DNA of 63,964 nucleotides, counting the filler, from Bigelowiella natans CCMP2755 (taxonomy: Eukaryota > Protista > Cercozoa), in NCBI GenBank assembly GCA_000320545.1. It is 6 parts of 6 records of this genome, joined end to end, with 100 filler letters (N's around TTAATTAATTAA, not from the genome) between each part and the next. Parts side by side here need not be neighbours in the genome. Positions count along the whole stretch, not along the records: positions 15,278 to 34,708 come from ADNK01002761.1; 5 more parts are not named here. One strand, written 5' to 3'. Below, one piece after another: positions 15,278 through 34,708 of the stretch (its first letter is position 1; every line of letters starts with the position of its first letter). Both the position numbers and the translations under genes were made by a program. A model generated the notes under the pieces. That model was not told where the DNA came from, ran no database searches, and worked only from the letters and a program-made list of their open reading frames with translations.

Positions 15278-16014
15278 CGTTTGCTTCCTTTCGAAGAGTT
15301 GTGTTTATTTTTATTAAAGGTTAATATTTTTATTAAAATCGTGCAACGCGTAATCATTGGCGAAGCTTTCGCGAATGCCACCGCACGTGGGGCAGCACAC
15401 TTCCGGTGTGCTGCCATGAGTCCCGCCCGGAACCCACGTGCCTATGCTGTATTAATATCTACGTTATCTATATTCTATATCCCGCGCCCACTTCTCCCTT
15501 GTTGTCGCACGTGACCCCCCTCTCCCCGTAGTGGTACGCGCTACAGTCAGCACACCGGAGTGTGCTGCCCCACGTGCGGCGGCCACGGCACAAGTGTGCC
15601 ACGAACAAATGAATGAGTGCACGATTCAATGAACACAATGTTCAACGAATTGTTCAACTGTCCAAAAGGAAACAAACGTGTCCCCCCCCTTTGAGCACTT
15701 GGCGCCAACCTTGAGCACTCACCTGCAACCCCACGCGCAACATCCAAATCCCAAGTTCCATCGCAAACTGCAGGAAAAGGCGTTGAAAGTCCACACTTGT
15801 CAATGAGCGAAGTGTGAATGCCAATGCTTGACCACTTCTCCAACGACCACGAACGCCAGGACGCTCCAGCGCTGTCCAGCTGTGCACGAAAGCGTTCACC
15901 ACATCACAGCAAAGTTTGTGATGCACGATGGACGTGCAATGTGACACGTGCATGCCACACGTTGCTGTGTCTGTCGTGTGTCGTTGCGGACGTTTGCATC
16001 GCTGTTTGCACACG

Positions 16015-16619
16015 TGTGGTCAGTTTGCGACCACCAAGTGCATGCAAGCGCGCATGTGCATGCACAGTGCAAATGGTGGTGCATGCTGTGCTTTGTTGTG
16101 TCTCACGTTTGCATGTGAGCACGTTCACGTGGGTTCAGGCTGTCGTTCCTGCACCTCAGTTGGTCACGTGGGGGCACGCAACGTGCATGCCCGGAAACGT
16201 GGTCACAGGAGGGGGGCATGCAACTGGGAACACCCTTCTCGGTTGTTTCCCCAACCGTGGATGTTCCTAGGAGCACCCTCGGTGTTTTGCTTGCGACATG
16301 GAGTCGGCCTGCGTGTCACGACGTTGCAGGGGAAAGTGGCCTGCGTTTTCCCTGACGTTTTGGGCAACTGCTGCTGCGTGGCGTGTTGCTGCTGGGGATG
16401 CTGTGTGTCCAGCACACGACGTGCATTGGCGCGCAACGCGCTGGTTTGGCACACTCTGAAAGACCCGCAAGCAAGCGGCAAGCTTTCTTCTTTGGTGGCA
16501 CGCTCACGCATGCTCACGTCACGTCGTCTGTTCAACAGGGTTTCAGTTTTGTGGGTTCAAAGCATTGTCAAAGCACACATTGCACAGTTGTGTTGTCAGC
16601 GCTGCGCAATGCAACTGCA
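16015..16619 (+). repeat. 5' LTR (605 bp)
   Basis: Aligns end to end with 22268-22877; begins TGTGGTCAG, ends ACTGCA. Confidence 0.95.
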
Positions 16620-16620
16620 C

Positions 16621-16635
16621 TGGTGGCGGACGAAC
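16621..16635 (+). promoter_or_regulatory. Putative primer binding site (TGGTGGCG..., possibly TGGTAGCG tRNA-iMet-type before mutation)
   Basis: TGG one base after the LTR end. The tRNA assignment is inference. Confidence 0.55.
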
Positions 16636-19600
16636 TGCGTCAAGTGGAAAATCGAGGGAACTCGTTTGGGGCTCAGGGGGAGCCCAGAAACCATGCAGAG
16701 GAAGCTGAGAGCAAGGAATCCAAGATTGAAAATCCGGAAGTTTCGACGGGTGGCCATGCGTCACGGGAAGGCATCCCAGTGGCTCAACCCGTGACTTCCA
16801 GACGTTTGAATGAGCTTGGATCGGGCGCCCGGCACTCCCTGACGGTGGATGAGGTTCTGGAGCAGTTTGGTGACCTGACTGTTTCAGCAGGCCGACGAGT
16901 TGCAAAGTGTGTTTTGCACTGCGACGGCATTGATGAAGGTGTGTCTGGTTTGGTCAGAACGATGACCACTGACTTGGAATCGCGAGAGTTCGCATTTCAT
17001 CGTTGCTTGGATGAGGGAACAACTTTGCGAACTTGGGCCTGCACGATGAAGAAATGCAGAGACCCAGGTTGTGCTCCGCCAGGCATGGTGGACAGGATGG
17101 AGCGGAAGGCCAAGCTGCAGCCTTCGGTCCGAGACATTGCGGGTGCCATCGACTCGTTTCGACGGCACTGCCCTGTCAAAGGCAAGCTGTGTGTGGCTGC
17201 CATGAGCCCGGCACAGTTCCGTGGGAGTGCTCGTGGGCTTCACAATGGAATTGAAGCACACGCTGCTTTGGTCGGCCAAGCCGACTTGGGGTTCGGTTGC
17301 AAGTGTTTCCAGACGTGTTTGTCCTCTCACACGCTTGAGAGGCTCCGTCGGGAGGCCACAAGGAATGCACATGCTTCTGAGAGCCCAGAGACCCAGTTTG
17401 AGATGGCTCTGCAGCACCTCTGCGATGAGGAGGACGAAGAGAAGCTTCAGCGCGACTTCGAGGATGAGCTCGATTTCCTTCGGCGAAAGCGGTGTCGACG
17501 TGTTGATGCGATGCACCGGCAGTTCAGCGAGCTTCTTCTGGAGTTTGCTGGACTTCGTTTTGGGCATGCCAACAAGTTGCGGCACTTCCGGCGCTTGTTG
17601 GTGGGTCACCAGTTGCACGACAAGTTCATCGCGCCACTCAACGGATTTGCGCCGTGTGACGTCGATGGACTTGTTGAGTTTTTGCGGCCACTGGAGGAGA
17701 GCCATTGTGAACTTGCGGCTCATCCTCCACACGCTGATGCATCCACAGTTGCAGGACCTGCGGTGCAACGCGAATGCGTGCACTTTTCCAAACGTGGGAA
17801 GTGCAATCACGGTGATGAGTGCAAACTTTTGCACGTCAAGCAAAGTTCTGCAAGTGAGCAGAACGAGCAGAAATCTGAGCAGTGCACCAAGGAGCAGCTT
17901 GATGAAGTGAAAAATCAAGACTGTGGGCTTCGTTTGAAAGGTGAATGCCATCGTGGGGACAAGTGCAAGTTCCGCCATGGTGCTGGGAGTCTCAATGCTG
18001 CTGGAGGGGCGAATGCCAATTTGGCCTCTCACACCTGTGAGGAATCGGCGGATGCTCCAAGGCAAAGTGTGGAGGCATCGCTGCTGCAGGTCAACTCCCA
18101 GTCACTTCCCAAGTTGACAAAGGAAAGTGAGCGTCGTCACTGTGAACGAGACCCAAGTTTGAGGTCTCAGAAGAAAGCAAAGTGCTTTCTGCAGGCGGAT
18201 GACGGCGCTGTTGCAGTGCTTGGGTCAATCGACGATGGCGCTCAACCTGCTGCCATTTCAGAGGCTCCGTGCCAAAAGTTGAAGTCCTCTGGTGTCAGGT
18301 TTGGATGCAGGCCGATGGTGGGTGAGGTGGGTGGGCTCAATTCATCGATTGAGAATGAAACTTTGCGGGAAGTCGATTTTGCGGTCCAGATCAAAAAGTG
18401 CAAAAAGCATGGAGCGCGTGTTGAACTCCGAACTTGTGCTCTGGCAATGTCTGGACCGGTCTCGCAGGACTTTGCATTGGGCACAGGTGCCCTCAACACA
18501 AATGGCATCAATTCTGTCAAGGATCCTGACCCAGCAAAGCGAATTGTCACCATCGATGGTGAAATCGTCAATTTGCATCCGTGCAGCGTCGACGTGCTTT
18601 CGGCGACTGTTGTGACCGTCGTGGGCATGGACATGCCTCCGATGGCAGCTGCTCCCGGCGAGATTTGCAGCATGGATGCCAACGCCGTGGGAGAATTGCC
18701 TGGAGTGGAGGAGGTGTCGTCTGCAGTTCGAAAAGAACTGCAAAGTGCCGTGGATCATGACTTTGCAAGTGATCATGACCACACGATCAATGCACAAGGT
18801 TTGCCTGATGTCGACATCAAATCGATGGCAAGTCCCATCGAATCGGATGGAGTGCTTCTCCAGCGATCATCCAGCATTGCACCGTTGTCAGAGTTTGGCG
18901 ACCAACGTGCAGTCGCTGACTCTGACTTGGCAAACGGCCACGTGCTGGACATGCTTGATCGCTTGGAGAACGAGGTGGTGACGAAGGAGAGCTTGTTGCC
19001 GGGTTCACAGCAATTCCATCACCTTCGCACTGTCACTTGCCGCTTCCGGAAGTGTTTTGTTGTGAAACTGCCGGAGGTGGGAAAGTGTGAGCTGCGGGAA
19101 CCGCACGATGTCAAGCGATGGCTGAAGCCGGGCTGCAAGCCGGTTCGCCAGCGGCCTTGCCACTTGGAGCCGAACAAACTTGAGCTCACGAAGCTCAAGC
19201 TCGACCAAGTGGTGAGCGATGGGTTGTGTTGCAAGGTGACAAGTGACACATCTGAGTGGGCGTCGCCAGCTTTTTGTGTGTGCGATGAAGGAAACGCATC
19301 ACCACGCGTCGTGGTGGCGATGGGTCGCTCAAACAAGCTCGTCGAGCTCACGTGTGCTGTTTGCCCTGTGACTCGGGATGCAGTGAGAAAATTGATGAGT
19401 GCTCAATGGGTGACAGTCTCTGACAGCAAAGCTGCATGGAGACAGCTTGGGATGACTGAGTGCACGAAAGTGGTGTTCGCATTTGTCACTCCATTCGCGT
19501 CGTTTGCAAGCGACGGCTTGCCGATGGGGCACAAGAACGCTCCTCAAGTTTGGGTCGAGGAGGTGGCCACAAGGTTCCTCGTTGGGACACCAGGTGCTGT

Positions 19601-21110
19601 CGTGCACTTCGACGACTTCTTTGCCATTGGACAGTCGCCGATGCAAGCGCTTGTGGGTTTTGCCAAACTTGTGCAACAGTGCGAAAAGTGCAATGATCAT
19701 CGAAGTGCCACCAAATTGCACACTTTTCCCAAGCGACTTGCAGCAGCAGGTTTGATGAAGGAAGCGAAGACTCACTGTCCAGATCCCAAGCGCACGGTTG
19801 CCATGGACAAGCTGGAGCGACCAACAAAAGGGAGGCGGTTCTCAAAGCACGTGCGCCGTCTTGTTGGTTTGTTCGTTCATTGTTTGGAATGCACGAAAGG
19901 CTTCTGGCAAATCGCTGCGCCGATGAAGGATTTGCTCATGCAAGGAGCGGCACAAGTGTGGACAGCGAAGCACGATGAAGCTTTGGATGCATTGAAAGGC
20001 ATGCCAAAGAAGGCGGTGTTGCACGTGCCTGATTGTGAAGCTGCACCCATGAGCCAGCCATTTGTTCTTGACACTGACGCGTCTGATGTGGCTGGAGGTG
20101 CTGCGCTTTCCCAGGTCATTGGTGGGAGCGAACGCCTGCTGGCTTGTTGCTCGTTTGCATGGAAGACAAACGAGAGGAGCTGGCACATTGCACGAAAGGA
20201 GCTTGCGGCTGGAGCGAAGGGGCTTCACCGGTTCCAGCACGTCACTGAAGGCTGCCCAATTTCAATTCGCATGGATGCGAAAACGGCGCGGCATTTCGCG
20301 CTGCACGGAATGGATGAAGTGCAGCTGCCGTGTGCAAGGTTGAGCGCAGCACACTCTGGATGTCCGTTGGTGGACATCCAACATGGAAAGGGGGAAAAGC
20401 ACACCAATGTGGACCCTTTCTCGCGGCCGAATGCTGACGAAACTCGCGACGAAAGGAAGTCGCATCGTCAGTCGCTGGCCTCTCTTTTCCCGTCACGTGC
20501 GGAGGCGGCGAAGCAAGAGGAAAAGCTGGTGAAGTCTGAAGCTTGCCTCTCCTCTTGCTCAGCCAATGAGACGATGATTGACTTCGATGTCCCTCATCTC
20601 TCTGTTCATTCTGTGGAGTTGCAGACTTGGGCGTGCTGTGCCACAGAGGTCCAGGTGTCGACGACGCTGTCTGATGTCACTTTGGAGCAGCAGCGTCCCG
20701 ATTTTGAGAAAATCATCGATGCTCTCGAGGACGAGAAGAATGTCAATCATCTTCTCGTTTCCTCTGAATGCAAAATGGCTCCTGGTGAGCTGTGCCACAT
20801 GGGCTCCTTCCAGATTGGAGGAGGTGCACCGCTGCAACTCTGTGCACCTTCTGATGAACGCCAGGAGGTGTTGCAGGCGTGTCACGTGGACAATGTGGCG
20901 AATCATCGCAACGCTGATGATCTCGCAAAGAAGGTTCTGCGCGGCCATTGCTGGGTTGGAGTCCAGAAAGCCTGCCGTGGATTTGCAAGGCAGTGTCAGT
21001 CTGCACACGTGCCAAAACGCGCACGAAGCAGCGCCTTGCTTGCAGCATGGCGACCGGGAAATTGGTGGCACGATTGCAGTGGATGCAATCGGCCCTGTCG
21101 ACGGCGCTGA
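16621..21110 (+). pseudogene. Gag-Pol polyprotein (CCCH fingers, aspartic protease, RT, RNase H, integrase Zn finger), Tyr-free
   Basis: IDDGAQ (PR). WASPAF, FAFVTPF, LPMGHKNAP, VVHFDDFF (RT). FVLDTDASDVAGGAALSQ, KELAA, HTNVDPFSR (RH). The computed ORF start at 16383 lies inside the LTR and is an artefact of stop-codon loss. Confidence 0.92.
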
Positions 21111-21720
21111 GCACCACACGCAGACGCTGTGCGTTGTGGCCATTGGTTGCGTTTGCACCAGGGCAGTGAAGCGCACGAGCTCGGCGCGCACGGCGGAATT
21201 CATCACGTCGCACACGTCAAAACACGGATGCCCTGAGCAGGTCATCATCGACCAAGGGCCAGAGAACGTGGGCAAAATTGTGCAGCACTTGCAAAATCGG
21301 CTGCGGCTCAAGTTCATCAAGGTGTCTGCTGAAAATGGCCAGGGAAACTCAGCATCAGAGCGGAAGCATCGACCTGTCAATGATGGGATCATGGCGATGC
21401 TCCTGCAAAACGTTGAGGATCGGCACAACTGGCACAAACGTTTGGAGGTGACAACACTCAGTGTGAATGCCACAATCGATGAGTGTGGTCATTCACCGGC
21501 TCACCTCACGTTCGGATGTCAGCCGAAGTTCGTGGCTGATGTGGAGAGCAAGTCGGTGGCGGCTCCAGGGACCGGGGACCTCGATGAGAGGATCCAAGAT
21601 CTGGAAAAAATGCGGCTGCTGTGTGCCACTCTGAAGGAAGATTGCAAATTGGTGAAAAACTTCACGAGAAACGAGAAGCTCAATGCTCAAGACGAACGTG
21701 AAGTGGGGGATGTGGTGTGA
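21000..21720 (+). pseudogene. Integrase catalytic core (DDE), frameshifted relative to pol
   Basis: IAVDAIGP, HGCPEQVIIDQGPENVG, GNSASERKHR and GHSPAHLTFG in ORF 20578-21720; frame change near 21000-21060. Confidence 0.88.
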
Positions 21721-22251
21721 CTTTTCCGCAAGGAAAATCGCAAAGAAAATGCTGTCACGAAAAAACACGAAATCAAAAAGACTGGCCCTGTGACTGTCGT
21801 GGCCAGGAGCAGCAAATCCCATGCCCATCAAATCATTGACCCGAGGACGGGGCACGATGATGATGTGCACGCGAAACACCTTTCGCCTCATGGTGCACTT
21901 GCCCCGTTGCCAGAAGTGCGCCCGGTGGCTCCAGACATTGAGGATGATTTTGCTGGCAAGGATGATGAGGATGCTGATGGTTCCTCCAGCTCGTCGGACT
22001 CCCAGGGGCCTTCTGGTGACCGGATTTCGCGGGACAACACTGTCCAAGGTGAACGCAATGGGAGACCAACCAATGTTGGTCCGCACGTTTCTTGGATTTT
22101 GTGTTTTCGCAAACACGTGCTGCCACACGAATGAATTGGTGGCGGTGCAGTTGGTGCAAAAATTTTTTTTCTTCCCTTTTTTTCCAATTTTCTTTCAGCA
22201 CGCGTGATCCCACTCGTGTGTTGTCATCATTGAGTTGGGGGTGCAAAAGTT

Positions 22252-22267
22252 GGGGGGGGGGGGGCAG
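22252..22267 (+). promoter_or_regulatory. Polypurine tract
   Basis: G13-CAG immediately before the 3' LTR. Confidence 0.8.
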
Positions 22268-22877
22268 TGTGGTCAGTTTGCGACCACCAAATGCATGCAA
22301 GCGCGCATGTGCATGCACAGTGCAAATGGCAGTGCATGCTGTGCTTCATTGCACCTTGCATTTGCATGTGAGCATGTTTGCATGGGTTCAGGCCATCGTT
22401 CCTGCACCTCAGTTGGTCACACAGGGGCATGCAACGTGAGTTGCATGCCCGGAAACACGGTCACAGGAGGGGGGCATGCAACTGGGAACATCCTTCTCGG
22501 TCATTTCCCCAACCGTGGGTGTTCCTAGGAGCACCCTCGGTGTTTCACTTGCGACATGGAGTCGGCCTGCGCATTGTGATGTCATGGGGGAAAGTGGCCC
22601 ACGTTTTCCCCAATGTTTTGGGCAACTGCTGCTGCGCAGCACGTTGCTGCTGGGGATGCTGTGTGTCCAGCACACGATGTGCATTGGCGCGCAACGCGCT
22701 GGTTTGGCATGCTCCAAAAGACCCGCAAGCAAGCGGCAAGCTTTCTTCTTTGGTGGCATGCTCATGCATGCTCACATCGTGTCATCTGTTCAACAGGCTT
22801 TTGGTTTTGTGGATTTGAAGCATTGTCAAAGCACACATTGCACAGTTGTGTTGTCAGCGCTGCGCAACACAACCACA
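22268..22877 (+). repeat. 3' LTR (610 bp)
   Basis: Matches the 5' LTR with one 5-bp insertion; ends ACCACA followed by TSD ACACG. Confidence 0.95.
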
Positions 22878-23679
22878 ACACGTCGTGCCCTGAACTTGCA
22901 CTCCCATCAAGGTTCAGTTTCATCAGGTGTCGTGCTTGGAGAAGCAGCCCTCGATTGTGTCCACGCTTTTCGCGTGCATTTCACGTTTTGTGTTTCCAAT
23001 GCATGGCCATGCTTTTGCAGCTGAGCCACGACAGCTAGACACCCTCCATGCAACGCAACTGATCAGGTGCAAGTGACAAGCACGCGTGCTCAGTCGTGCG
23101 AGCCCGAGCCCTCGCCAGCTCGACTGCACGTTGATGACGCACGCTGTGGCTGCAGGGTGCAGCAAGCAAACACCCCTGCTAGCCTGGCTAGCTGGACGCG
23201 TGGTCCATGTGACCCAGTGAGTGTGGTGGTCGCACCACGTGCTGCGATGTCGCACAACAACAGACGAACAAGCAACCGTTTGTCCATTTGACCACTCAGC
23301 CATCACGGCGTTGCATGTGCTTTTCCCCATGCCAGCATGACTCAGCAGGCTTGCTAGCTTGCACCTCTGTGTCTGCACGTCAAGTCGTGTTGCATGCACC
23401 ACATGGCGTCCAGAAGCCCAATTTGCAAATTGGTTGGCACACAATGGGAGGGAGGAACATGCGAGCATGCCAGCATGGCAACACTTGGACACTTGCGCTG
23501 TGCATGCACACACGTGTGCATGTGCATGTGCACACATTTGACATGTGCTGTTGCTTGGTCTACAATGAGTTGCTCTCAATGGACACGTGACATCACACAT
23601 GCACAATGCATGCTGTTGCTTGGTCCACAATCATTTGATGTTCGACTTGCAGCATGCCATGCACGACGACAACAACATT

Positions 23680-26600
23680 TCAGCGTTGCTGGCTTGACGG
23701 CACAAAACCTCCGTGAAACGAATGTGGCACGTGATGCTCCAGCTCAACTTCAGCCAAGGAATTGCCTTGAATGTCTTTCGCATCCAGAATCACAAGCTGA
23801 GATGAATGAATGAGATGCGGTGTCATGTGATGGTCTGCATAACCTCTTCCCCCTACAAGCCCCGTTTGGCAACATCATCATCTCTAGATGTTCACTAAGA
23901 TTCTAGTCTGGACCTTCGATTTGTGAGTCATTGAGTCGTACACATACGTCAGCACGTAGCCATCATCCTGAAAGAAGAGATTTCGTGACAGATGGAAAAA
24001 AAGTGCAGAAATTTGGAATGATTTGATCACTAAACAATGTGAGACTCCAATCTTCACAACACCAACAAATCAACTAATAATCTGAAATGTCGATTCCCCC
24101 CCCCCCCCCCCCCCCCCCCCCCCAAGTGGTTCTACTGAATCAACGCTCACCTCCTCGTTTGAGTTCTCTCGAGCCGCAAACACAGGCTCCCCTGAAAATT
24201 TTCATAGAAGTAAAATAAAATGAAGATTTTTAGATAATGATATCCAGGAAGATGAACCCATCCCGAATTCTCTCAAGCTCCCGTGTGTCGCGTTTATCCA
24301 TGGATTAAGATAACGGAAAAGAAGAAAAATTAGGGCTACGAATCTCCACCGACCAGCATATTTCGTTGGACCAAAGCCTCTGATTGTATGAATTCCCGTT
24401 TTCATGTCGATCTTTCCGATTGCGTTGAGAAACCCTGGAGTTGCTCCATTTGGGAGGACTTCCAGCGCATTGACAAATGCGAATCTAATGGAAATTTGAA
24501 GACACAAGCGATGTCAAGAAAACCAGAGGAAAACACGCAGGAGATAAAGAGAGATTGGAGAGAGGAGAGCGGTTTGTAGAACCTTGATTCTCTCGCTGTA
24601 TATGCCTGGTTAATCGTAGGCAATTCACATAGAAGCGGGGAAGATTTCCCGAGTCTTCATGTTGATTTCGGTAGAAGGAGTTGTGGGAGAGACATCCAAC
24701 TCTATTTCATGCAGTGTGGGCAGCGTTCTCTCGCTGAATCTTGCATTGTACATATCGAAACGGTTTGCTTCCATCTCTTCGCGGCTGCCCTCCTTGTGGA
24801 TCAGAAGCTGGACCTGAAAGAAGAAAATTACGAACGAGCGAAAAGATCGGCGCAGAAAGTATCCATTCATCAGAGATAATACCCTATCATCATCGTAACA
24901 TTGTATACACGCAGCTCTTTCATATTTGCGGGCATCTCAACCTTTATAGTACTCTTCTGTCCTTGGCTCCCCCCCTCCTGGTGCGCGTTAACCATGTGAT
25001 CAAATGACAGGGCTGGAACCTTCGCATCTTTTCGCACGCTCATATCTTTCTTATCAATGACGATGACCCTGGCGTCAGAGACGCCCCCGCCCCCCCCTCC
25101 TTGCCACCGGAATTCCCTTCCTAGAGAGTTTAACCCAAGCCCAGCTGTGAGCACCTTGGAGATGGGGCACACATACGGGTGGAGAATGAAGACGAGAAAG
25201 TCTTCGGTGCTGGCGAAATCGTGGATAAAAGCCAATTCCTCGAGGCTGATATCAGTGGTTCCTACCACACCCTGAGACTCTTGGACCTTGTACACGCGCA
25301 ATTTCATCGGGTAGCCTTTTTACGATGAAGGGAGGGGGAGGGGAGGGGGGGGGGGTAAGGAAATGGACAAGGAGGAGACGTAGGAAGAGGAGAAGGAAGA
25401 AGGGACTAAATTCGCATTATCGAAACGCATTCACTAGCAAGATTCTCAAGATTTCTTTCCCGGAAAACCTTGTACTAGTACATCTGCTTGCGATCCTACT
25501 GATACTATCTAAATCTGGTGCTCCTACCGAGCACAAGGCCGTGATTGAACATGATCTTATCGTCTGCCCTCGATCTAAACGTGTCCACCTGTGCGAAATC
25601 ATTGGACGATCAAAATTACGAGGAGTAATCAAATAAGGATGGCGTATTAATGATTCAATGGGAAGGAATCGGTCAGCTTCAACGATGACAGTAATTATAG
25701 GAGGGACCTGTGGATGCGCCGAGAAGAAGGCCCCTTTGTTCAGGCCTTTGATTGCGTATTCACCAACCGTGTGCAGCGTCTTTGGATCGATATCCATCGG
25801 CGGCCCGCCTTCGTGCATTAGGCAAAAGGAATATTACATCACTAATTGCAACCAGCGACAACTCCCTCTCTCCCTTCTCCTGATTATCGAGCTGCTCAAC
25901 GAAGTATTGTACCCTCGCAGAGCGCAAGAAGTCGTCCATTCCAGTCGATTGTAGCTGTGTTCCCGGGATTCGTAGGGTTCCGGCCGAGATTTTGTGGGAC
26001 CTTCGGCAAATGTGAGTACAGGGGTTAAGCGAGGAGGAGCTCCTTCTCAATGCAACACAAAGAACACATATCCTTTATGACTAGTACATCTTCTTACCCC
26101 CCCCGCACGCTGAGTCCACGCACCACGTAGCTGAAACCCTGCATCGTCTGACACAGACGATTGAGCATTGAATCGTTCCGTCCTAACGTATCGCCCTGTG
26201 AAGGTTGCGCGGTTAAGTTTCCCATCTAATTCCATGCGGGTGATGTAGCCGTCGCCATCGAACCAGTGACCGTATTTGTGCTCACCAACCTAAGAGCAAG
26301 TGGTTGTGTTGGTAGATGTTTCAAGGTTACACATGGATGGAAAAAGAAGGAGGAGATGATGAAGAGGGGTGGGGGGCACATAATGCCATTATAGTACCCA
26401 GACTATGGACAATCATGATAATAATAATAATCATGATAACAGCCTACCCGAACACGTCCCGCGCCATTTCGGTACAGCACGCCCTTCATGTCGCTTGGGA
26501 TTTCCCCCACTACTCGCGGTTGATACTCTTCGATGTCTCCAGCAGGCTCTAGCCCGCCTTCCATATTTTTTATTTGACAGTTTTAAGTTTACGGGGGGGA

Positions 26601-27300
26601 GACAGACAGTTCCACTGAAGAACTAACTACAAATTGGCCAAGGGAAAACAACGTTAGTGGTGAAAGCTCTGGGGGTTGCACCATACCTCTCCACGGGGCT
26701 TGCTGAATTCGAGAGAGAATAGAGGGTGGTGGTCTAAATTTCATATCCAAAGAGGGGTTTGACCCAAAAAGACGCGGAGGATGCCGTGGTAGCTTGCGTT
26801 GGGGGGGGGTGGGTGGGCAGGGACTTATCTTAGTGAATAACGCCTGTCTTGCTGCTACAATGACAAGAATTATTACATTACGAAAACCTGGAACTAGTTG
26901 AAAATATCAAAACTTATTATCTTCAGCAGTACCTACTGCGAAGTGATATCCTAATCAAGTCTCATTTAAATTCGAACGAACCTCAACGGGCGAAGAAGAC
27001 GTATGCGGAGGCTTCAGGCAACGTCGTCTCTTTTCCATGGAAGATAAGCGATTGCCGCCCATCGCAATGCTGTTTCGGAAAATCCTGTGTCTCGCTGCTA
27101 GCTCGTTTATATTTACTCTTGACCGGGCATACGACGAAGATGCATCGCCTGGCAAAAAGGGTTGAGCGTACGAGCGAGCGACAAAGTGAGGAGGGGGAGG
27201 AGGAGGAGGAAATACAAGCAGGACCTTTGATGCTTGAAGCGAGGCTCGATAGGATCCAGACGAAAGCTACACCATTAATTGAATCGCGACAGCCGAGCAT
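23680..27300 (-). CDS. Carotenoid oxygenase (RPE65/CCD family), multi-exon; start approximate
   Basis: Exons read GEIPSDMKGVLYRNGAG, HWFDGDG, FFSAHP, FIHDFASTE, FEMPTIN, DDGYVLTYVYD and LVILDA...HHVPHSFHG; stop at 23680-23682. Confidence 0.9.
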
Positions 27301-27781
27301 TATGCGGCAACAGAGAGTTGTTGCACGTACCGTTGCCCCCCCCCTCCTTTCTCTAGCCGAGGGCCACTCGTTTGCTTTTTACCACCCCGACGGTCCTCCC
27401 AATCGGCGATTTATTTTACGGCGCCACTCCATATTCCAAGTCGCACCATAAAAGCGAACGAATATCGAGCTAACAATTAAAAAACTTAGGAAATGACCTG
27501 TGAAAATCCGTTGTGACAGCATAATTTGCCCATTTTTTTTTATATTTAGAAACAGTTTTAATTTTGGAGTAAAATCCCAGCTTGAACGCAGCCCTTCACA
27601 CACGATAACGCCTTCATACGACCGTTAAGGGAGGGGGGAGAAAGTCTCCATTGGGACTTCCACGCCGCAGCTTCTAGACTGCGCCGATTCTAGGAAACAT
27701 CTCCTGGATCCAGATAGACATTTGGTCTATCCAACCCACCCACCCACCCACCCTATTCCACCTCTTTCTTTGGTGTCGACC

Positions 27782-30636
27782 ATGCACGTCAAAGCTCAGT
27801 GGAGGTTCCAAGGACAGACGGAAAAGGACTTGTAAGAAGAAGAAATAGAAGATCTCTGCCTCTGATTGAACTAACATTGCTTAAAGAAGAACCACCTTCT
27901 GCCGAAGATTGCCCTTTATTCCTTACATTTCATTAGGGTTCTTGAGGAGGGGGACATTGTCAATGTTTTGACACAAAAAGACTCGAAGGAGTCTTGGTGG
28001 GAAGGTAACGATTAGCCAGAGTATTTTCGATGTGGGATGGTGCTACTGCCCAACTTCCCCCCTATAATTGTTATGGTTATTCATATTAGGACGTAATCTG
28101 AGGACGGGCCGTGTTGGGTTTTTCCCTGCAAACTACACGGTTGAATGCTCCCAGAAGGTGCAATCGTCGTCTGAAACTATTACAGCCTGCACTCCTCTCC
28201 TTGTGAGTAAGTGCTACATATCTAAGATCGTTTGGTTGCGGTGCTGAATACTATTAGGAAATCGAATCGTTCCTGCATCGTCCGAAGGAAATGCAAGCAG
28301 CAGCTTCCATCCATCAATCAAACTTTCAAAGGGAATCAATTAGCAGCCGTACAGGGCGTGAACCGAGGACAACACGGAGAATGAGCGGAATAGTATCACC
28401 GAAACTGAGGGATATCATCAGTAAGCGCAACGCTGTTGTGTTGGAAATTATGTGATTCATTCCGGGAAATTTACTGATCAGGGAGTCCCCAGAAAAGCAC
28501 GATGATGACAAAATTTTCGCTCGATTTTGAAGCTGCGGCCAAGTATAAGGTCCAATCGCGTATCATTATCAATTATCTTCACCATCACATTCACTGTATT
28601 GCCACTGCCACCGCTCCCCATGTTAGCACAAGTATTGTATTTGAGATTGCTCTTGGCCTGTGCGGTGCTGCCTCTATTTCTGAGTCTAATACTTGGCCTC
28701 CTTGCATTGTAGTATATTAAATGCCTGGGGAAAGGGTCGTTCTCCACGGTGCACTTAGGTTTGTAGATTTCATAATGATATGGTTGTCCAAGTATTCCTC
28801 ATGTGGCCCTTGACATTGTTGTGCAAATGCAGCCAAACTGAGGAGAGATGCTAAGACTGATGGTCGAAGTCCCAGAAGTCCTAAGGTGGTGATCTCACAC
28901 GCGCCGCGCAGTATACAAGTTCCAAGAAAACAGCGGCACGCATGGCTTCAGTATCATCCATGCGAAGCTCGATAAACAAAACGCTAAATCTGTTTATTTT
29001 CCTCTTTCCAACCAAGGCGGATGACTACGTGTGCATTAAGTCAATACCGGCGAAGTCGTTAGCGGAACTGAACATGGCCCTCCAGGAGGCTATGATGCTG
29101 TGCAACACTGGAACTTCAAAGGTCGTCTCCCTGCTCTGCGTCTTCATCACACACCTCTTACCTCCCCCCCCCCCTCTTACTTCCTATATTTTCCTGATTT
29201 GCATGGCGTTCCATCAACATCTTGCCATAGGGTGTGATCGATATCATGGACGCGTTTATGGAGTGTAAAGGTACTAAGAGAGAGGGAGAGAGAGAGAGAA
29301 AGAAGGGAAGCGGGTTGAAGAATGGAATAAGAATTGCCGGCTTGATTGGTGCGCGATACGAATTGAATGAACGCGCCCCCCTCCCGTCTTCGTCTTGTTA
29401 GGCTGCGGCAGCGGTATGGCCTTGAGTGAAATGACGGGGCCTGTTTCCTTTTGCATTGTGACCGAGTAAGCAGAGACCGCCTCATTAACAACTCCAAACC
29501 AATACTCGTCGCATGCACTCGGGGATAATTCAATAAATGCCAACGGGATCTTCGTTTTTTGCTTTGAGTAGATACTGTGCTGGTGGCACTCTAAAGGACC
29601 GCATTGAGAGGAGGAAGGGACGGAAAGAGGTGCGAAGAAGAATGCCAGCAAAGATGTTTGGTCAGATACGATAGTACCCTTCGCCCTTGAAGCGTTGTTT
29701 CCTGTTATAAATGGACATTGGTTCTCATCATCACCATCACCACTACCACCATCATCATCATCATCATTATCATTACCACAGGGAGGCTTTCCGGAATATG
29801 AGACAATTCAGATCATATATGATGTAGCAACGGTACTCATTAACCATTTGGAGGAGTCTGATGTGTTTTGCTACTGCATTGCATTGTTTGAGTCATCGGC
29901 CCGAAGACTAATAAATTCTGCCTGTTCGTGCATCTGGTGTCCTATCATTCCAGAGCGTGGCAGATATTCATCGGTTGAACATCCTGCATCGCGATCTAAA
30001 ACCTTCGAATGTCTTCTTGACGAGGTCCGAAAATGGCAACGAATTTTTCTTGAATTCTAACTCTCCCCCTCCCCCCTCGCCCCCGCTACATCAAAAGCGA
30101 CGGTGAGATACGAATAGGTGACTTTGGAATTGCAAAGACGCTTTTAAGACAATCCAACACTAGCACTTTTGTGGGGTAAAAATTGTCGGATCTTCATTAC
30201 TCTTTATTATTAAGAATATATTTAGCAGTGGGGGGGGCGATAATAAATAAGTTGTTTATTCACGTACATTAATAATGGCAGGACTACTGGGTACATAGCT
30301 CCAGAAGTGCGAAATATGAAACCGTATGTTTCAGAAATAGATATAACAACTTAGATCATAGAGCAAACAACACACATTCTGAGAGGCATCGTATCCTTAC
30401 TTCTTATCCCTTTTTTTGGGATGTTTTCCCGAAAATAGTGGACTAGTTTGTGCCGTTCCTTCGCTCCGTTTGCGAGTGGATGAGTGAATGTACAAACATC
30501 TACGCGCCAATGCATACCTAACTTCCCCATTCCATCACCGACTACAGGTACGATTACAAGTGCGACATGTGGTCAGTTGGCGTCATCATGCTGGAACTGC
30601 TAACTCTATCAACTTATATGCAGTCTGAGGTAGAGA

Positions 30637-30682
<46 letters not shown>

Positions 30683-32415
30683 GAAGGGTGAGGGCGGGGG
30701 GGGATTAACAACTGTAATAATAGCAGCAGGAGGATATATGTAGATTTTTAGTGGTAGACCTATCATCTCTATTTCCTTGGAAATAACGATTTCTACATTG
30801 TCGTTCTACTGACCGTTGTAAAATCTATGGTGTGTAGGAGTTACAGAGACTAGAGAAGCGTATTAGCGCGTCTGCAATGACGATTCTCCTCGGGCTGCTT
30901 TCGCCTAACCCAAGTAAGATCATCGCCACATAGCGAGCAAACTCTACTGTTTACTTGTTCTACACTGCCTCTTCGAGAGAATATTTATGATGATAATGAC
31001 GATGGTGGTGGTGGTGGTGGTGACATCAAGTGTACGTAAGCTACACGAGTAGAGACATCGCTTGGTTTTTGTTCTCATCTCTCTCCTTTGCCCCCATTGC
31101 AGAGCAGCGTCCCTCCGCAAATAGAATCGCCAAATACATCTGGAAGCACTATCCGATCAAGTTAGTGGGGGGGGGGGGGGGGGGAGGGGTGCATAGACAT
31201 GCTCTCTGATCAGAACCCATGCTTGCGAGGAAGAAGAGGACTTAGCGACCGATGATTTTCTCACAGGCTCAGCTTTCGAATCAACAAGATAATGAGAGCC
31301 ATTGGGACGGTGAGACGACATCAACGCCCTTCGCCCAGATTACATGCTAATAGTAGCTCGCTCATGCCCCAGTGCTTCGCAGGGGGGGTATATATGTGTG
31401 ACTTTTTGATTGTTTGGCTGCTCGCTGCTGCTGCTGCTGCTGCTTTTGCTGTGAACACTGCTGAACAGAACTCCGAGGGGCTGATCACAGCGGACATTCT
31501 CTGCGGATTCCTTAGTAAGATGAGGCAGTTTTCGGGGAGAGTTGGAAAGGTAAGCTAGCAGCAGCACTGGAACACTGACACTTTTCAAAGAACGAATCTG
31601 GAGTAGCCAGTAATCAGCAAAATCTCGGTTTTTAATTGGAATCATCAGTGTTCAAAGATAAGCAGAGAAACATAGCGGAGAAGAAGTACATGTTGTGCCA
31701 CGTCACCCATGGCGTTCATTTATTTATTTTTCCCCCCAATAATCGGTATTCATTCTTCGTCGATTGTTTGTGTACAGTACATCGAGAAAACACCACAACA
31801 AGAAGCTAGAAGCTTGGTAGATTCTTTCTCCGCCAACCACTTCCACCCCCCCCCCTCTAGAGGAGAAACGTTTTCGTCTGCGTATGTTTCTTAACCTCCC
31901 GACTAATTTATCCCTCTGCACTGTTTTCCCGTTTTATCATTATTCCAGGTTGATTCCCTGGGGAGGGGCAGAAACGGGATATCAGCGCAGAAGGTGAACA
32001 GCATGTGATCTAACATTTCTGCTTCGTCTTGATTTTGCTCCTAAACGAATACAGTTTACGAAGTTTCTCGGGGACTACTACAGGCGCCATCCTCTGAAGC
32101 TTGCGTAATAATGATGTTGGTGCTGATGATTCTCTTGACAATTAATGTTACATGGATATCCAACCTCGATAGACGTCTAACTATTCTCTTTCGTTGGAAA
32201 TCACAAGGTTGATGGAGCAGTGTCTTAACAGCAGTGCCTCGCCGAAAACAGGGTTCAGCAGCGTGAGGACAGCCATAAATCCCGAGCAGCCTAATGTACG
32301 TGCATCAGCGCCATCGGAGTTTGTCAACTCTGCCCAGGTTCTCAAAGACGAGAAAAAAGCCACGGTGAGAGCGACAGCCATCACGCATTCTGCGCGATCT
32401 GCTCCAAGTATGTAG
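27782..32415 (+). CDS. SH3 domain-containing Ser/Thr protein kinase (NEK-like), multi-exon
   Basis: SH3: EEGDIVNVL..SWWEG..VGFFPANY. Kinase: LGKGSFSTV, HRDLKPSNVFL, IGDFGIAK, GTTGYIAPE, DMWSVG. Confidence 0.88.
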
Positions 32416-33382
32416 GCTTCTAGCGGGATTCGCGTCTGGAGCTGCGTACAAGGCCACTTTATCAATATTGTAATCATGTCTAGCCGTCTCTATGTGTATC
32501 GAGTTAAGTGTTATTATCAGAACTGATCGAACTTGCACAAAACTGCAAGTGATAGTTCGTGGAGCTGGTATATCCACAATGATGCTGTACGTGCTAGTGT
32601 GTCACCACCCGCGCCATGGCTGCGGCAGGTTGATCGCAGCAGACCATCTAATTATGCACACACATTCGTACGCATCAAGAGATCTGCGTATTAGCTCTTG
32701 TAGATCTAGTAGATATATGTCCCCGCGCAATGATGAAAGACGTGCACGTGGTACATGTCGGCACAAACACACATGCACACTACTAGCTACACAGCTAGAC
32801 AGCTATGGCTAGCTAGCGCACCTATCTAACTACATGTAGTTGTAGGTACGTTGCACCACACAAGCGTCACTGTGCATGTAAATCATGTAGGGATTGTTAA
32901 AAATGGGCTAGACATGATTCTGTGCTGACATACGCGTGCACATCCAACGTACCCGTCTAGTCGTCGCTGTCTTATATATACACTCTAGTACTGTCTAGCT
33001 GTGTGCAAGCGCATGTGCTAGTGTGCTGCACTCTGTATCGCTACGGTCCCGTCTTCAACGATCTAGCGATGCGCTGTACACATGTTTATGTGCAACATAC
33101 TATATATAAGCATGTAGCGCCTACGACGCTACGCTAGCTAGCTAGCTAGTTAGTACGGCCGATGCGCACGTCGATCTATAGCCATTTCATTCGATTCATC
33201 TAGCTATGCTTTAGTAGTCAATAATTTACAACTAGAGCTAGACAACTGCATGCATAGTGCTCCACGATACATGCAACAAAAGGCAATCCCTGCACGCTCT
33301 ATCTTGTTGGATGGTGCACATATTATTGAGATAAAGCGTAGATTCTCTCATCCCCCCCCCCCCCCCCCCTCCCGCCAAGGAA

Positions 33383-33481
33383 ACACAACACAATCCGCTT
33401 TTGTAGCAAGCGACAAGCAGCACCTCAACACCAAGATATTCACCGATAACAAGCATATATTATTCTTATATCATCCTTCTT

Positions 33482-33515
<34 letters not shown>

Positions 33516-34341
33516 CGTCGTCGGCATCACCGGTTGCTGGGCAAGATTTGGATAAGCCTCCAAGATAGCATACTTCATCGCCTCCCTTTCCTGTGAGCCA
33601 GGAAGCATATATCAGCGACATGCCAGTACTGCTACTACTTCTATTGAGCCAACTTTTCCTTCTTCTTCTTCTTCTTTTCTTCTTGTTCTGTTAGTTAATG
33701 TTAGTTAATGACGATCACCATAGGATTGCACATAATGTTCAAGCTGCTCCCGGTGACCCACCCCGCGACAACGAAGTGCTCCCTAGTAAAAAGCAACATG
33801 CACGCGGAGACGACGTAACACGACAAAGAACACTCAAAACAATGTCTTAATGTTGTATTTTCCAGAGGAAGATGGGCTTGCATCGGGCAGGTGTGTGAGC
33901 GGCGTCTGGGCCGAAGCGGCTACTTGTTATATCTTTGGAATCATCATCGTCGATCAGGCGTTGGGCATTCTCCGTGAGTGACAGTGCACGATGATGATGA
34001 TGATGGTGATGATGGTGGTGTGCATGGGTACTGTTGTAGCATTACTCTGAGACTTTGCGATCAGGGTCGTCGAGAACAATGGCGCATCTGATGGTGGGTA
34101 ATAGTTAGAGAATTTTATCCCATAATTACAAGTGACACACGCATATACGAGTGCAAAAGGAAGAGAAGGAACAGCAAGTGCGCGGGGTTCCACTGAGGAC
34201 GCTCCTATGACTCGGCGATGATTGAGAAACATCTTATTTTTGGAGATACGACTAACGGAAATACACCTACCCTCCTTTGTCTAACTTTTGCGCCTGTTCT
34301 TTCAACGATTCATCCATGACCGCAAACTGGTGATAAATGTG

Positions 34342-34378
<37 letters not shown>

Positions 34379-34673
34379 CTATACATTAGCACACATACAA
34401 AAATACATGTATTGTACATGATCTCATGCGGCAATAGTGACGCATTCTCCATCGTTTCCCCCCTCAAAACCCCCCTCCCTCCCCCAACGAATCTGGGATT
34501 ATCAAAGAGTTCCGCTGTCTCGCGGAATGAGTAGCGTCCATCATGGGCATATTCACGATAACAGCTACTACGAGATTTTTCTCTGCCATAGAGCTACAAA
34601 CCATCAATCTTTGTAACTGTACACAAGCTATTACCTTCCAGGACGTGACTTTGAAAAACGTCAGGAACTGCAC
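33383..34673 (-). CDS. Hypothetical multi-exon protein, partial
   Basis: Short protein-like exons separated by microsatellite-containing introns; truncated by the gap. Confidence 0.3.
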
Positions 34674-34708
34674 GGCACTTGCTTTCAGAGTTTGCTTTGA
34701 GAGGAATG

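Follow-up and report, generated by a model that had tools for sequence, protein, structure and literature searches.

What process can leave more than 8 kb of genomic DNA, a host exon included, almost devoid of the dinucleotide TA? The question is raised by a zone (15545-23850) within the window analysed here, a stretch of 63,964 nucleotides, filler included, joined from six records of the Bigelowiella natans CCMP2755 genome (GenBank assembly GCA_000320545.1), of which positions 15,278-34,708 come from ADNK01002761.1. The zone encloses a Ty3/Gypsy long terminal repeat (LTR) retrotransposon together with DNA on either side of it, and an initial annotation had read it as the product of a new genome-defence system with no described counterpart. 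The phenomenon, previously unknown, is already described as a kind in the main text of a 2026 preprint, which gives exactly this signature experimentally (bioRxiv 10.64898/2026.01.13.699255). The locus has very probably been saturated by the process reported there in Bigelowiella natans, an A:T to G:C hypermutation that is specific to TpA and limited to certain regions.

A sharply bounded zone almost free of TA

Across the 8306 nt of the zone, eight TA dinucleotides were counted where base composition predicts about 428, an observed/expected ratio (O/E) of 0.02, and TG (908; O/E 1.61) and CA (766; O/E 1.64) were in excess, with CG at 499 (O/E 0.81). This deficit of TA, which bears out the depletion and the TG/CA excess noted in the initial annotation, is well outside chance expectation. 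The longest run without any TA extends over 6258 nt, and the eight survivors comprise six CTAG, one CTAC and one TA at the extreme edge (23840). The edges of the zone are abrupt, lying at 15547/15548 on the left and between 23840 and 23854 on the right. In the remainder of the same piece the TA O/E is 1.28 on the left and 0.80 on the right. The mutation is confined to a delimited region: in a survey of TA-poor zones that covers 48 loci (~170 kb) of this genome, host loci have a TA rho of 0.72-0.97 and a TA frequency of 0.055-0.07.

The zone holds a complete Ty3/Gypsy LTR retrotransposon, with two LTRs, a target-site duplication, primer and polypurine sites, and a reverse transcriptase (RT)-RNase H module placed before the integrase. 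Its parts are as follows:

16010-16014, no strand: left target-site duplication, 5 bp
16015-16619, plus strand: 5' LTR with TG...CA ends; a single residual TA at 16268 (CCTAGG)
16620-22267, plus strand: Gypsy-type internal region, 0 TA across 5.6 kb
16621-16632: tRNA-primer-binding-like site, directly after the 5' LTR
16383-21110, plus strand: 1575-aa open frame, gag-pol remnant with CCCH zinc fingers, RT, RNase H and integrase zinc domain; 0 tyrosine (Tyr)
20578-21720, plus strand: 380-aa open frame, in a shifted phase, for the C-terminal portion of the polyprotein, aligning to residues 1459-1688 of the intact copy; 0 Tyr
22252-22262: polypurine tract with a G-run, ahead of the 3' LTR
22268-22877, plus strand: 3' LTR, 88% identical to the 5' LTR; residual TA at 22526 (CCTAGG), homologous to 16268
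22878-22882, no strand: right target-site duplication, 5 bp

The domain order within the element is gag zinc fingers, RT, RNase H and integrase. The RVT_1 match scores 20 bits, under the Pfam cut-off, even in the intact sister copy L003, and no chromodomain was detected in the element. The zone is broader than the element at both ends, taking in ~0.5 kb of left flank and ~1 kb of right flank.

The assembled sequence was compared with contigs from three DNA runs of separate studies, one from 2021 and two from 2025, and an exact match with 0 differing letters was found over 21563-24086 (piecewise cover). Moreover, the copies in the zones carry a single change per site (TG or CA, seldom CG, never TA), which makes strand-wise miscalling unlikely, as miscalls would mix TA, TG, CA and CG. 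An assembly artefact is excluded for the zone. Farther along the piece, one base of the assembly is absent at 24641 and at 26763 in all three runs, and position 26794, which is not a TpA, reads C instead of T in two of the three; these discrepancies are likely to be assembly errors or strain differences.

Sister copies give the direction of change

A search of the genome (91.4 Mb, 3736 contigs) for members of the same family revealed many copies. Some are TA-free (L001, which is the locus described here, L002, L005, L009, L018, L025 and L026) and others are TA-normal at 46-47% G+C (L003, L004, L006, L007, L010, L012, L014, L016, L021 and L027). Among the TA-normal copies at least nine are young, 98-100% identical to one another, and untouched; C2337 and C2420 are two of the contigs that carry them. 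For the sole purpose of counting site states, the ancestral state was approximated by the sites where the young copies L003 and L004 agree. By this measure, all 503 ancestral TA sites of L001 have been altered, to TG (230), CA (210) or CG (29), with 0 remaining TA, and likewise all 503 in L002, to CA (223), TG (219) or CG (20), whereas ancestral CG was kept at 82%. Comparison of unmutated with mutated copies yielded 448 T>C and 439 A>G changes against 130-170 for the opposite transitions, and the A:T to G:C excess falls wholly on TA. The polarised spectrum over the family copies, proposed in the initial annotation as a check, is therefore TA-specific: when A>G changes are collapsed by strand and sorted by triplet, the frequency is ~0.5 per strand at TAN, which implies that each TA site changed once, 0.11-0.19 at NAT, a weak component, and 0.02-0.10 (mostly ~0.05) elsewhere. 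The direction of change is TA to TG or CA and not the opposite, and the conversion is saturated in this zone. The spectrum is not one of CG to TG/CA, and decay of methylated CpG as the cause, a candidate that the initial annotation had also dismissed, was ruled out by the retention of CG.

The coding frames carry the same imprint. Tyr, which occurs 74 times in the 1813-aa frame of the intact copy L003, is missing from the 1575/1584-aa and 380-aa frames here, as had been noted from the sequence at the outset; at the 68 aligned Tyr positions of L003, Cys now stands at 36, His at 24 and Arg at 5. The replacement of GYSP...GY by GHSP...GC, offered as an example in the initial annotation, was found to be correct. 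The companion example, a YxDD box turned into HFDD, proved wrong: the RT active-site box, usually Y/F-x-DD, reads HFDD both at 19605 of the window and in the intact, TA-normal copy (L003:2146-7584). From the genetic code it follows that the long frames remain open on both strands largely because a change of TA to TG or CA removes TAA and TAG and creates no in-frame stop.

Mutation after integration, on both strands

An element's LTRs are identical when it integrates, and their comparison here dates the changes. TA-derived columns differ between the 5' and 3' LTR in 43 of 100 cases, most differing sites having TG in one and CA in the other, and the differences that are not at TA lie mostly in ATG/CAT contexts, that is, in a secondary target. 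LTRs that were identical when the element inserted and now differ at TA sites imply that the mutation took place after integration, on DNA. Both strands changed equally, TG and CA being about equally frequent in L001 and L002, in agreement with the inference of the initial annotation that both strands were hit. The dose differs within the zone, as indicated by the 5' LTR having more CG double changes (7 of 49 sites as compared with 0 of 51; p=0.005) and a lower ApT O/E (0.56) than the 3' LTR.

Along the element, each site took TG or CA at random: a runs test gave z=+0.8 for L001 and L002 alike, and long same-strand tracts do not occur. No simple flanking-base rule for this choice was found, the effects of flanking bases being mild (+1 C, 0.60; -2 A/T, 0.57-0.58). 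Several LTR sites are biased 12-16 to 0-4 across copies, without an evident context rule, and these strong per-site biases may come from shared ancestry. L001 and L002 agree in 64% of their TG/CA choices, where ~52% is predicted by context bias (an estimate). Together with the LTR biases, this sharing suggests that a partly mutated ancestor, or master element, was still mobile and was copied.

Sequence preference

Not all TA sites are lost with equal ease. In 55 kb of TA-poor zones only 58 TA are left, 40 of them in CTAG (14-fold enriched) and 10 in CTAC/GTAG. Three partly mutated solo LTRs, L017 at C3272:52158-52757, L020 at C3707:3054-3666 and L028 at C711:13794-14367, give the order in which sites are converted: TA flanked by A or T on both sides (W-TA-W) is retained at 0 of 34 sites, TA with one G/C flank at 19 of 80, and TA with G/C on both sides (S-TA-S) at 13 of 23 (p=5e-6), and two of the three keep the same TA sites beyond chance (p=0.0016). 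CTAG is refractory, and A/T-flanked TA mutates faster than G/C-flanked TA. Such faster loss of A/T-flanked sites would be consistent with an enzyme for which the duplex must open locally or the base flip out. CG outcomes cluster in ATAN/NTAT contexts, as would be predicted if CAT, which contains ApT, were changed a second time; ApT is a weak secondary target.

Two LTR positions depart from the general picture. Of 16 LTR copies that are saturated elsewhere, 7 still have TA at LTR sites 3 and 23 (site 23 being 16268 and 22526 of the window) and the other 9 have CA, never TG; the context of one site is CCTAGG and that of the other ATAG.

A single-copy flank and a host exon inside the zone

Beyond the element, the zone includes neighbouring DNA on both sides, with these features:

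22883-23850, no strand: TA-free 3' flank, single-copy; 6 TA (4 CTAG, 1 CTAC, 1 at the edge); TG O/E 2.0, CA O/E 1.9
23680-23796, minus strand: last coding exon and stop of a carotenoid cleavage oxygenase gene (RPE65 family); 0 TA; PF03055 positions 438-469 of 469
23797-23913, minus strand: last intron of the oxygenase gene, GT..AG inferred from sequence; the zone edge lies within it
23914-23966, minus strand: preceding oxygenase exon, normal TA
23967-24149, minus strand: next upstream oxygenase intron, supported by RNA reads (joint 23966-24150, 183 nt)
15548-16009, no strand: TA-free 5' flank; 0 TA; TG O/E 2.2
15548-~15690, minus strand: old truncated inverted copy of a ~270-bp dispersed repeat, 71-72% identity, TA sites converted
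15278-15547, no strand: young copy of the same dispersed repeat, ~270 bp; 21 TA, O/E 1.26; adjoins the zone

The 3' flank is as saturated as the element, although it is unique in the genome; at host TA density, so few TA in 22883-23850 would be expected with P<=1.6e-18. Of the oxygenase gene, the zone takes in the last coding exon, the 3' untranslated region (UTR) and also a portion of the last intron; RNA depth is present across 23470-23863. Taken alone, the absence of TA from the last exon has P=0.008. The initial annotation had described the neighbouring genes as normal in TA, which holds beyond the right edge, where the O/E is 0.80 as given above, and fails for the ~1 kb that follows the 3' LTR. 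A His occupies, in the oxygenase's conserved C-terminal motif, the place of the Tyr of the Synechocystis enzyme, a solved cyanobacterial homologue that served for comparison when no paralogue of the last exon, sought to polarise the His, was found. This His would be compatible with a collateral TAY to CAY change.

The saturation of single-copy flanking DNA and the sparing of near-identical young copies of the family together show that repetition is not the trigger. The claim in the initial annotation that the system inactivates repeats, if read as a repeat-sensing machinery, is not upheld on these two grounds and on a third, the single-copy nature of the preprint's main target (bioRxiv 10.64898/2026.01.13.699255).

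On the left, the contig begins at the young dispersed-repeat copy, which sets the apparent 5' edge of the zone and sits head-to-head with the old hypermutated fragment of the same repeat. About 680 candidate copies of this repeat, with ~90% mutual identity and normal TA (for example L032-L036), were found in the genome; judged by its size, it is like a miniature inverted-repeat transposable element or a short interspersed element. On the right, four RNA reads carry a T run before 22818, within the 3' LTR, as for a polyadenylated minus-strand transcript terminating there, and RNA depth is low across 22682-22878. This RNA end could belong to a form of the oxygenase transcript with a long 3' UTR or to an antisense transcript of the LTR.

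Young copies and other TA-poor zones

Of the seven young copies with assessable flanks, five (L003, L006, L007, L012 and L016) sit in or against older TA-poor zones, with very sharp junctions. Either the family favours such zones or the zones were already inactive when these copies arrived.

TA-free zones also occur outside this family: C2227:104610-106520 (L038), the entire loci L025 and L026, and L012:59-1489. Ten long open frames in the TA-free flanks of other copies were searched against Pfam, and a single weak match, to a retroviral protease, was obtained (L012:59-1489). The remnant of a retroviral-type aspartic protease in this zone indicates that other elements were mutated too. No recognisable domains were found in the zones of L038, L025 and L026, most such DNA being too degraded to name.

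The sole giant-virus major capsid gene of the genome (C3187:124672-125196; L048) lies in a 438-aa open frame, at a locus with a TA frequency of 0.034, a TA rho of 0.50 and a CA value of 1.39. Among its 121 TA sites, for which a viral baseline is lacking, A/T-flanked TA look depleted and CTAG is without enrichment.

Mechanism and alternative explanations

The data show the following sequence of events. A Gypsy-type element inserted, leaving its 5-bp target-site duplication, and later, as chromosomal DNA, the element with ~0.5 kb and ~1 kb of its flanks underwent A to G (giving TG) or T to C (giving CA) changes at TA. Each site took its strand independently of the others, the two strands being used about equally, and a changed site ceased to be a target. 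A/T-flanked TA went fastest, G/C-flanked TA more slowly and CTAG slowest, often surviving, and ApT (an A with a 3' T) was a weak secondary target that yields the CG double changes. All Tyr codons were thereby lost, along with many Ile, Met, Lys and Val codons, and stops were never created, so that dead frames stay long. As to the chemistry, we infer that an enzyme deaminates adenine in nuclear DNA, the resulting hypoxanthine being read as G at replication, probably in small doses over many cell generations. Targeting would presumably depend on a state of the region that is inherited, for instance silent chromatin or small RNA, and not on sequence repetition; this state would have sharp borders and be able to include neighbouring host DNA. 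The genome contains six loci of the cytidine-deaminase fold (on C980, C570, C3623, C3286, C1679 and C3588), of which five were tested and all have TadA as best match, plus one ADAT1-type locus (on C2414); these TadA/ADAT-like deaminases are available enzyme candidates. A bolder reading, less likely than not, is that of an enzyme occurring in nature whose substrate is adenine in double-stranded chromosomal DNA, with the preference W-TA-W > S-TA-S > CTAG and weak activity on ApT, directed not by homology but by an inherited state of chromatin or small RNA with sharp borders that can take in host exons, and acting on a family whose partly mutated master element was possibly mobile. If true, genome defence would here employ a natural DNA adenine base editor, the first of its kind.

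Several points weigh against this account. The ancestral state is approximate: outside TA sites, L003 and L004 differ from the old copies by ~9%. The state of the flanks may be due to spreading from the element or to its landing in an existing zone, both being compatible with the data. The deaminase set, which the initial annotation had suggested searching for expanded or domain-fused members, shows no obvious expansion or fusion, and none of its members is tied to the zones. The natural tRNA context of TadA, C-U-A-C, is one of the slower contexts here. At the six residual TA of 22844-24086, no de novo change was seen in contigs of the three runs, which can mask rare variants. Finally, because TpA and ApT are self-complementary, the sequence fits chemistry directed at A or at T alike; of the adenine-directed A:T to G:C mutator that the initial annotation had envisaged, the direction of change is borne out by the sister copies and the LTR pair, and adenine as the target base is one of two equal fits.

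It is on this last point that a rival chemistry enters. If the T of TpA were modified, for example to 5-hydroxymethyl- or 5-formyluracil, it would mispair with G and produce T to C changes, and all the site counts would suit such a target equally well. In dinoflagellates 5-hydroxymethyluracil is enriched at TpA, and 5-formyluracil does mispair with G, both of which count for this chemistry. We nevertheless consider it unlikely, given that no dioxygenase of the TET/JBP family scored above the family cut-off in the genome (best 23.5 against 34.9 bits), which weakly disfavours thymine oxidation, and that near-100% conversion by way of a mispairing lesion would demand very high lesion loads. A repeat-sensing system that resembles repeat-induced point mutation (RIP), where homology detects duplicated DNA and mutation follows, would explain why transposon copies underlie most of the zones examined and why a small dispersed repeat within the zone was converted too. 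It is hard to reconcile with at least nine copies of 98-100% identity that are untouched, some directly adjoining old zones, with ~1 kb of saturated single-copy DNA including a host exon, or with the 186-kb viral target, single-copy and mutating during asexual growth, of the preprint's main text (bioRxiv 10.64898/2026.01.13.699255), and we regard it as very improbable.

Two further explanations are less probable still. Editing of the element RNA from A to I at UA by an ADAR/ADAT-type enzyme, followed by reverse transcription, would draw on the preference for U before A of ADARs and of fungal ADAT-based mRNA editing. Editing of the sense RNA would yield TG alone, whereas TG equals CA here, and it would leave neither LTRs that differ at converted sites nor converted flanks outside the element; we give this reading scarcely any credence. 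RNA hyper-editing fixed by retrotransposition was rejected as a candidate on the LTR-pair and flank data. Least probable of all, to the point of being negligible, is an artefact or ordinary composition, whether systematic misreading of a modified motif, decay of CpG, biased gene conversion or an element that is intrinsically free of TA: three independent read sets are concordant, each site carries a single change, CG is retained, and the intact sister copies have normal TA and their full 74 Tyr. None of the outcomes that the initial annotation had named as refuting it was seen in the intact copies, the reads or the spectrum, and its reading of the signature was in essence correct. The TpA-specific, region-limited process acting on chromosomal DNA remains the reading that we prefer.

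What the locus contributes to the study of this process is a saturated end-state with an internal unmutated control. One family is represented in one genome by copies that are saturated, partly mutated or untouched, giving ~500 polarised sites per copy, and the enzyme question becomes more testable, the ranked preference (W-TA-W fast, CTAG refractory, ApT secondary) being one that any candidate enzyme must match in vitro. The locus also demonstrates that repetition is not the trigger, and it exemplifies how a host gene can be changed collaterally. An enzyme that deaminates DNA adenine in nature would, if real, be relevant to base-editing technology.

Comparison with known systems

The closest known system is that of the mutation-accumulation lines of Bigelowiella natans of Mettrop et al. 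2026, whose preprint, dated April 2026 in the version used here, reports in its main text de novo TpA to TpG/CpA hypermutation (bioRxiv 10.64898/2026.01.13.699255). There, out of 302 nuclear mutations that were new, 231 lay in an integrated giant virus (186 kb, single-copy) and a virophage; all except one were A to G or T to C, these all at TpA, at a rate of ~6e-7 per site per generation, and the hypermutation was limited to some lines, during asexual growth (bioRxiv 10.64898/2026.01.13.699255). The same source gives 124 genomic clusters of TpA-poor, CpA+TpG-rich windows, an enrichment of reverse-transcriptase and DDE domains among low-TpA coding sequences, and a TpA content of 3.3% (rho 0.45) in the viral region as against 6.0% in the host; its authors propose an ADAT2-like adenine deaminase and liken the process to RIP (bioRxiv 10.64898/2026.01.13.699255). 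The TA frequencies given above for the capsid locus and for host loci fit these viral and host values. As far as this main text goes, the viral hypermutation and the locus described here share the restriction to A:T to G:C, the restriction to TpA, the TpG/CpA products and the confinement to regions of foreign DNA; they differ in that the viral regions are partially depleted (rho ~0.45), whereas our locus is a retrotransposon and saturated. The main text of the preprint, supplements lying outside this statement, makes no mention of LTR elements, Gypsy, retrotransposon, ApT, CTAG or flanking context. Family-level polarisation, the LTR-pair test, CTAG and flank effects, the ApT target, random strand choice and a host exon within a zone accordingly appear to be absent from it. 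No other description of TpA hypermutation was found in a further literature search.

Fungal RIP, as in Neurospora, also produces regional, near-saturating and dinucleotide-specific transitions that kill transposons and may leak into adjoining DNA. However, it changes C to T at CpA and so creates TpA, and is triggered by duplication before meiosis; here the exact reverse is seen, TA being destroyed, with neither the C to T direction nor a duplication trigger. In contrast to RIP, near-identical repeats were spared here and unique DNA was mutated, and the process of the preprint operates in asexual lines. The ADAR and ADAT (TadA-type) enzymes, with which fungal ADAT-based mRNA editing is grouped here, share the conversion of A to I, read as A to G, and the U/T before the edited A (U33-A34 in tRNA; the 5'-neighbour preference of ADAR). 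Their substrate is RNA, apart from special reports of activity on DNA (ADAT2 of amphioxus), whereas the present changes lie in chromosomal DNA, on both strands, and with CTAG refractory. With APOBEC3/AID the process has in common that the host inflicts hypermutation on retroelements, visible as clustered transitions in genomic copies. APOBEC, however, converts C to U on minus-strand cDNA before integration, leaving G to A changes that are strand-biased and common to both LTRs, whereas the changes at this locus are A:T to G:C, post-integration and strand-symmetric. Cellular, site-specific A:T to G:C hypermutation of DNA is in this sense the mirror image of both fungal RIP and APOBEC editing.

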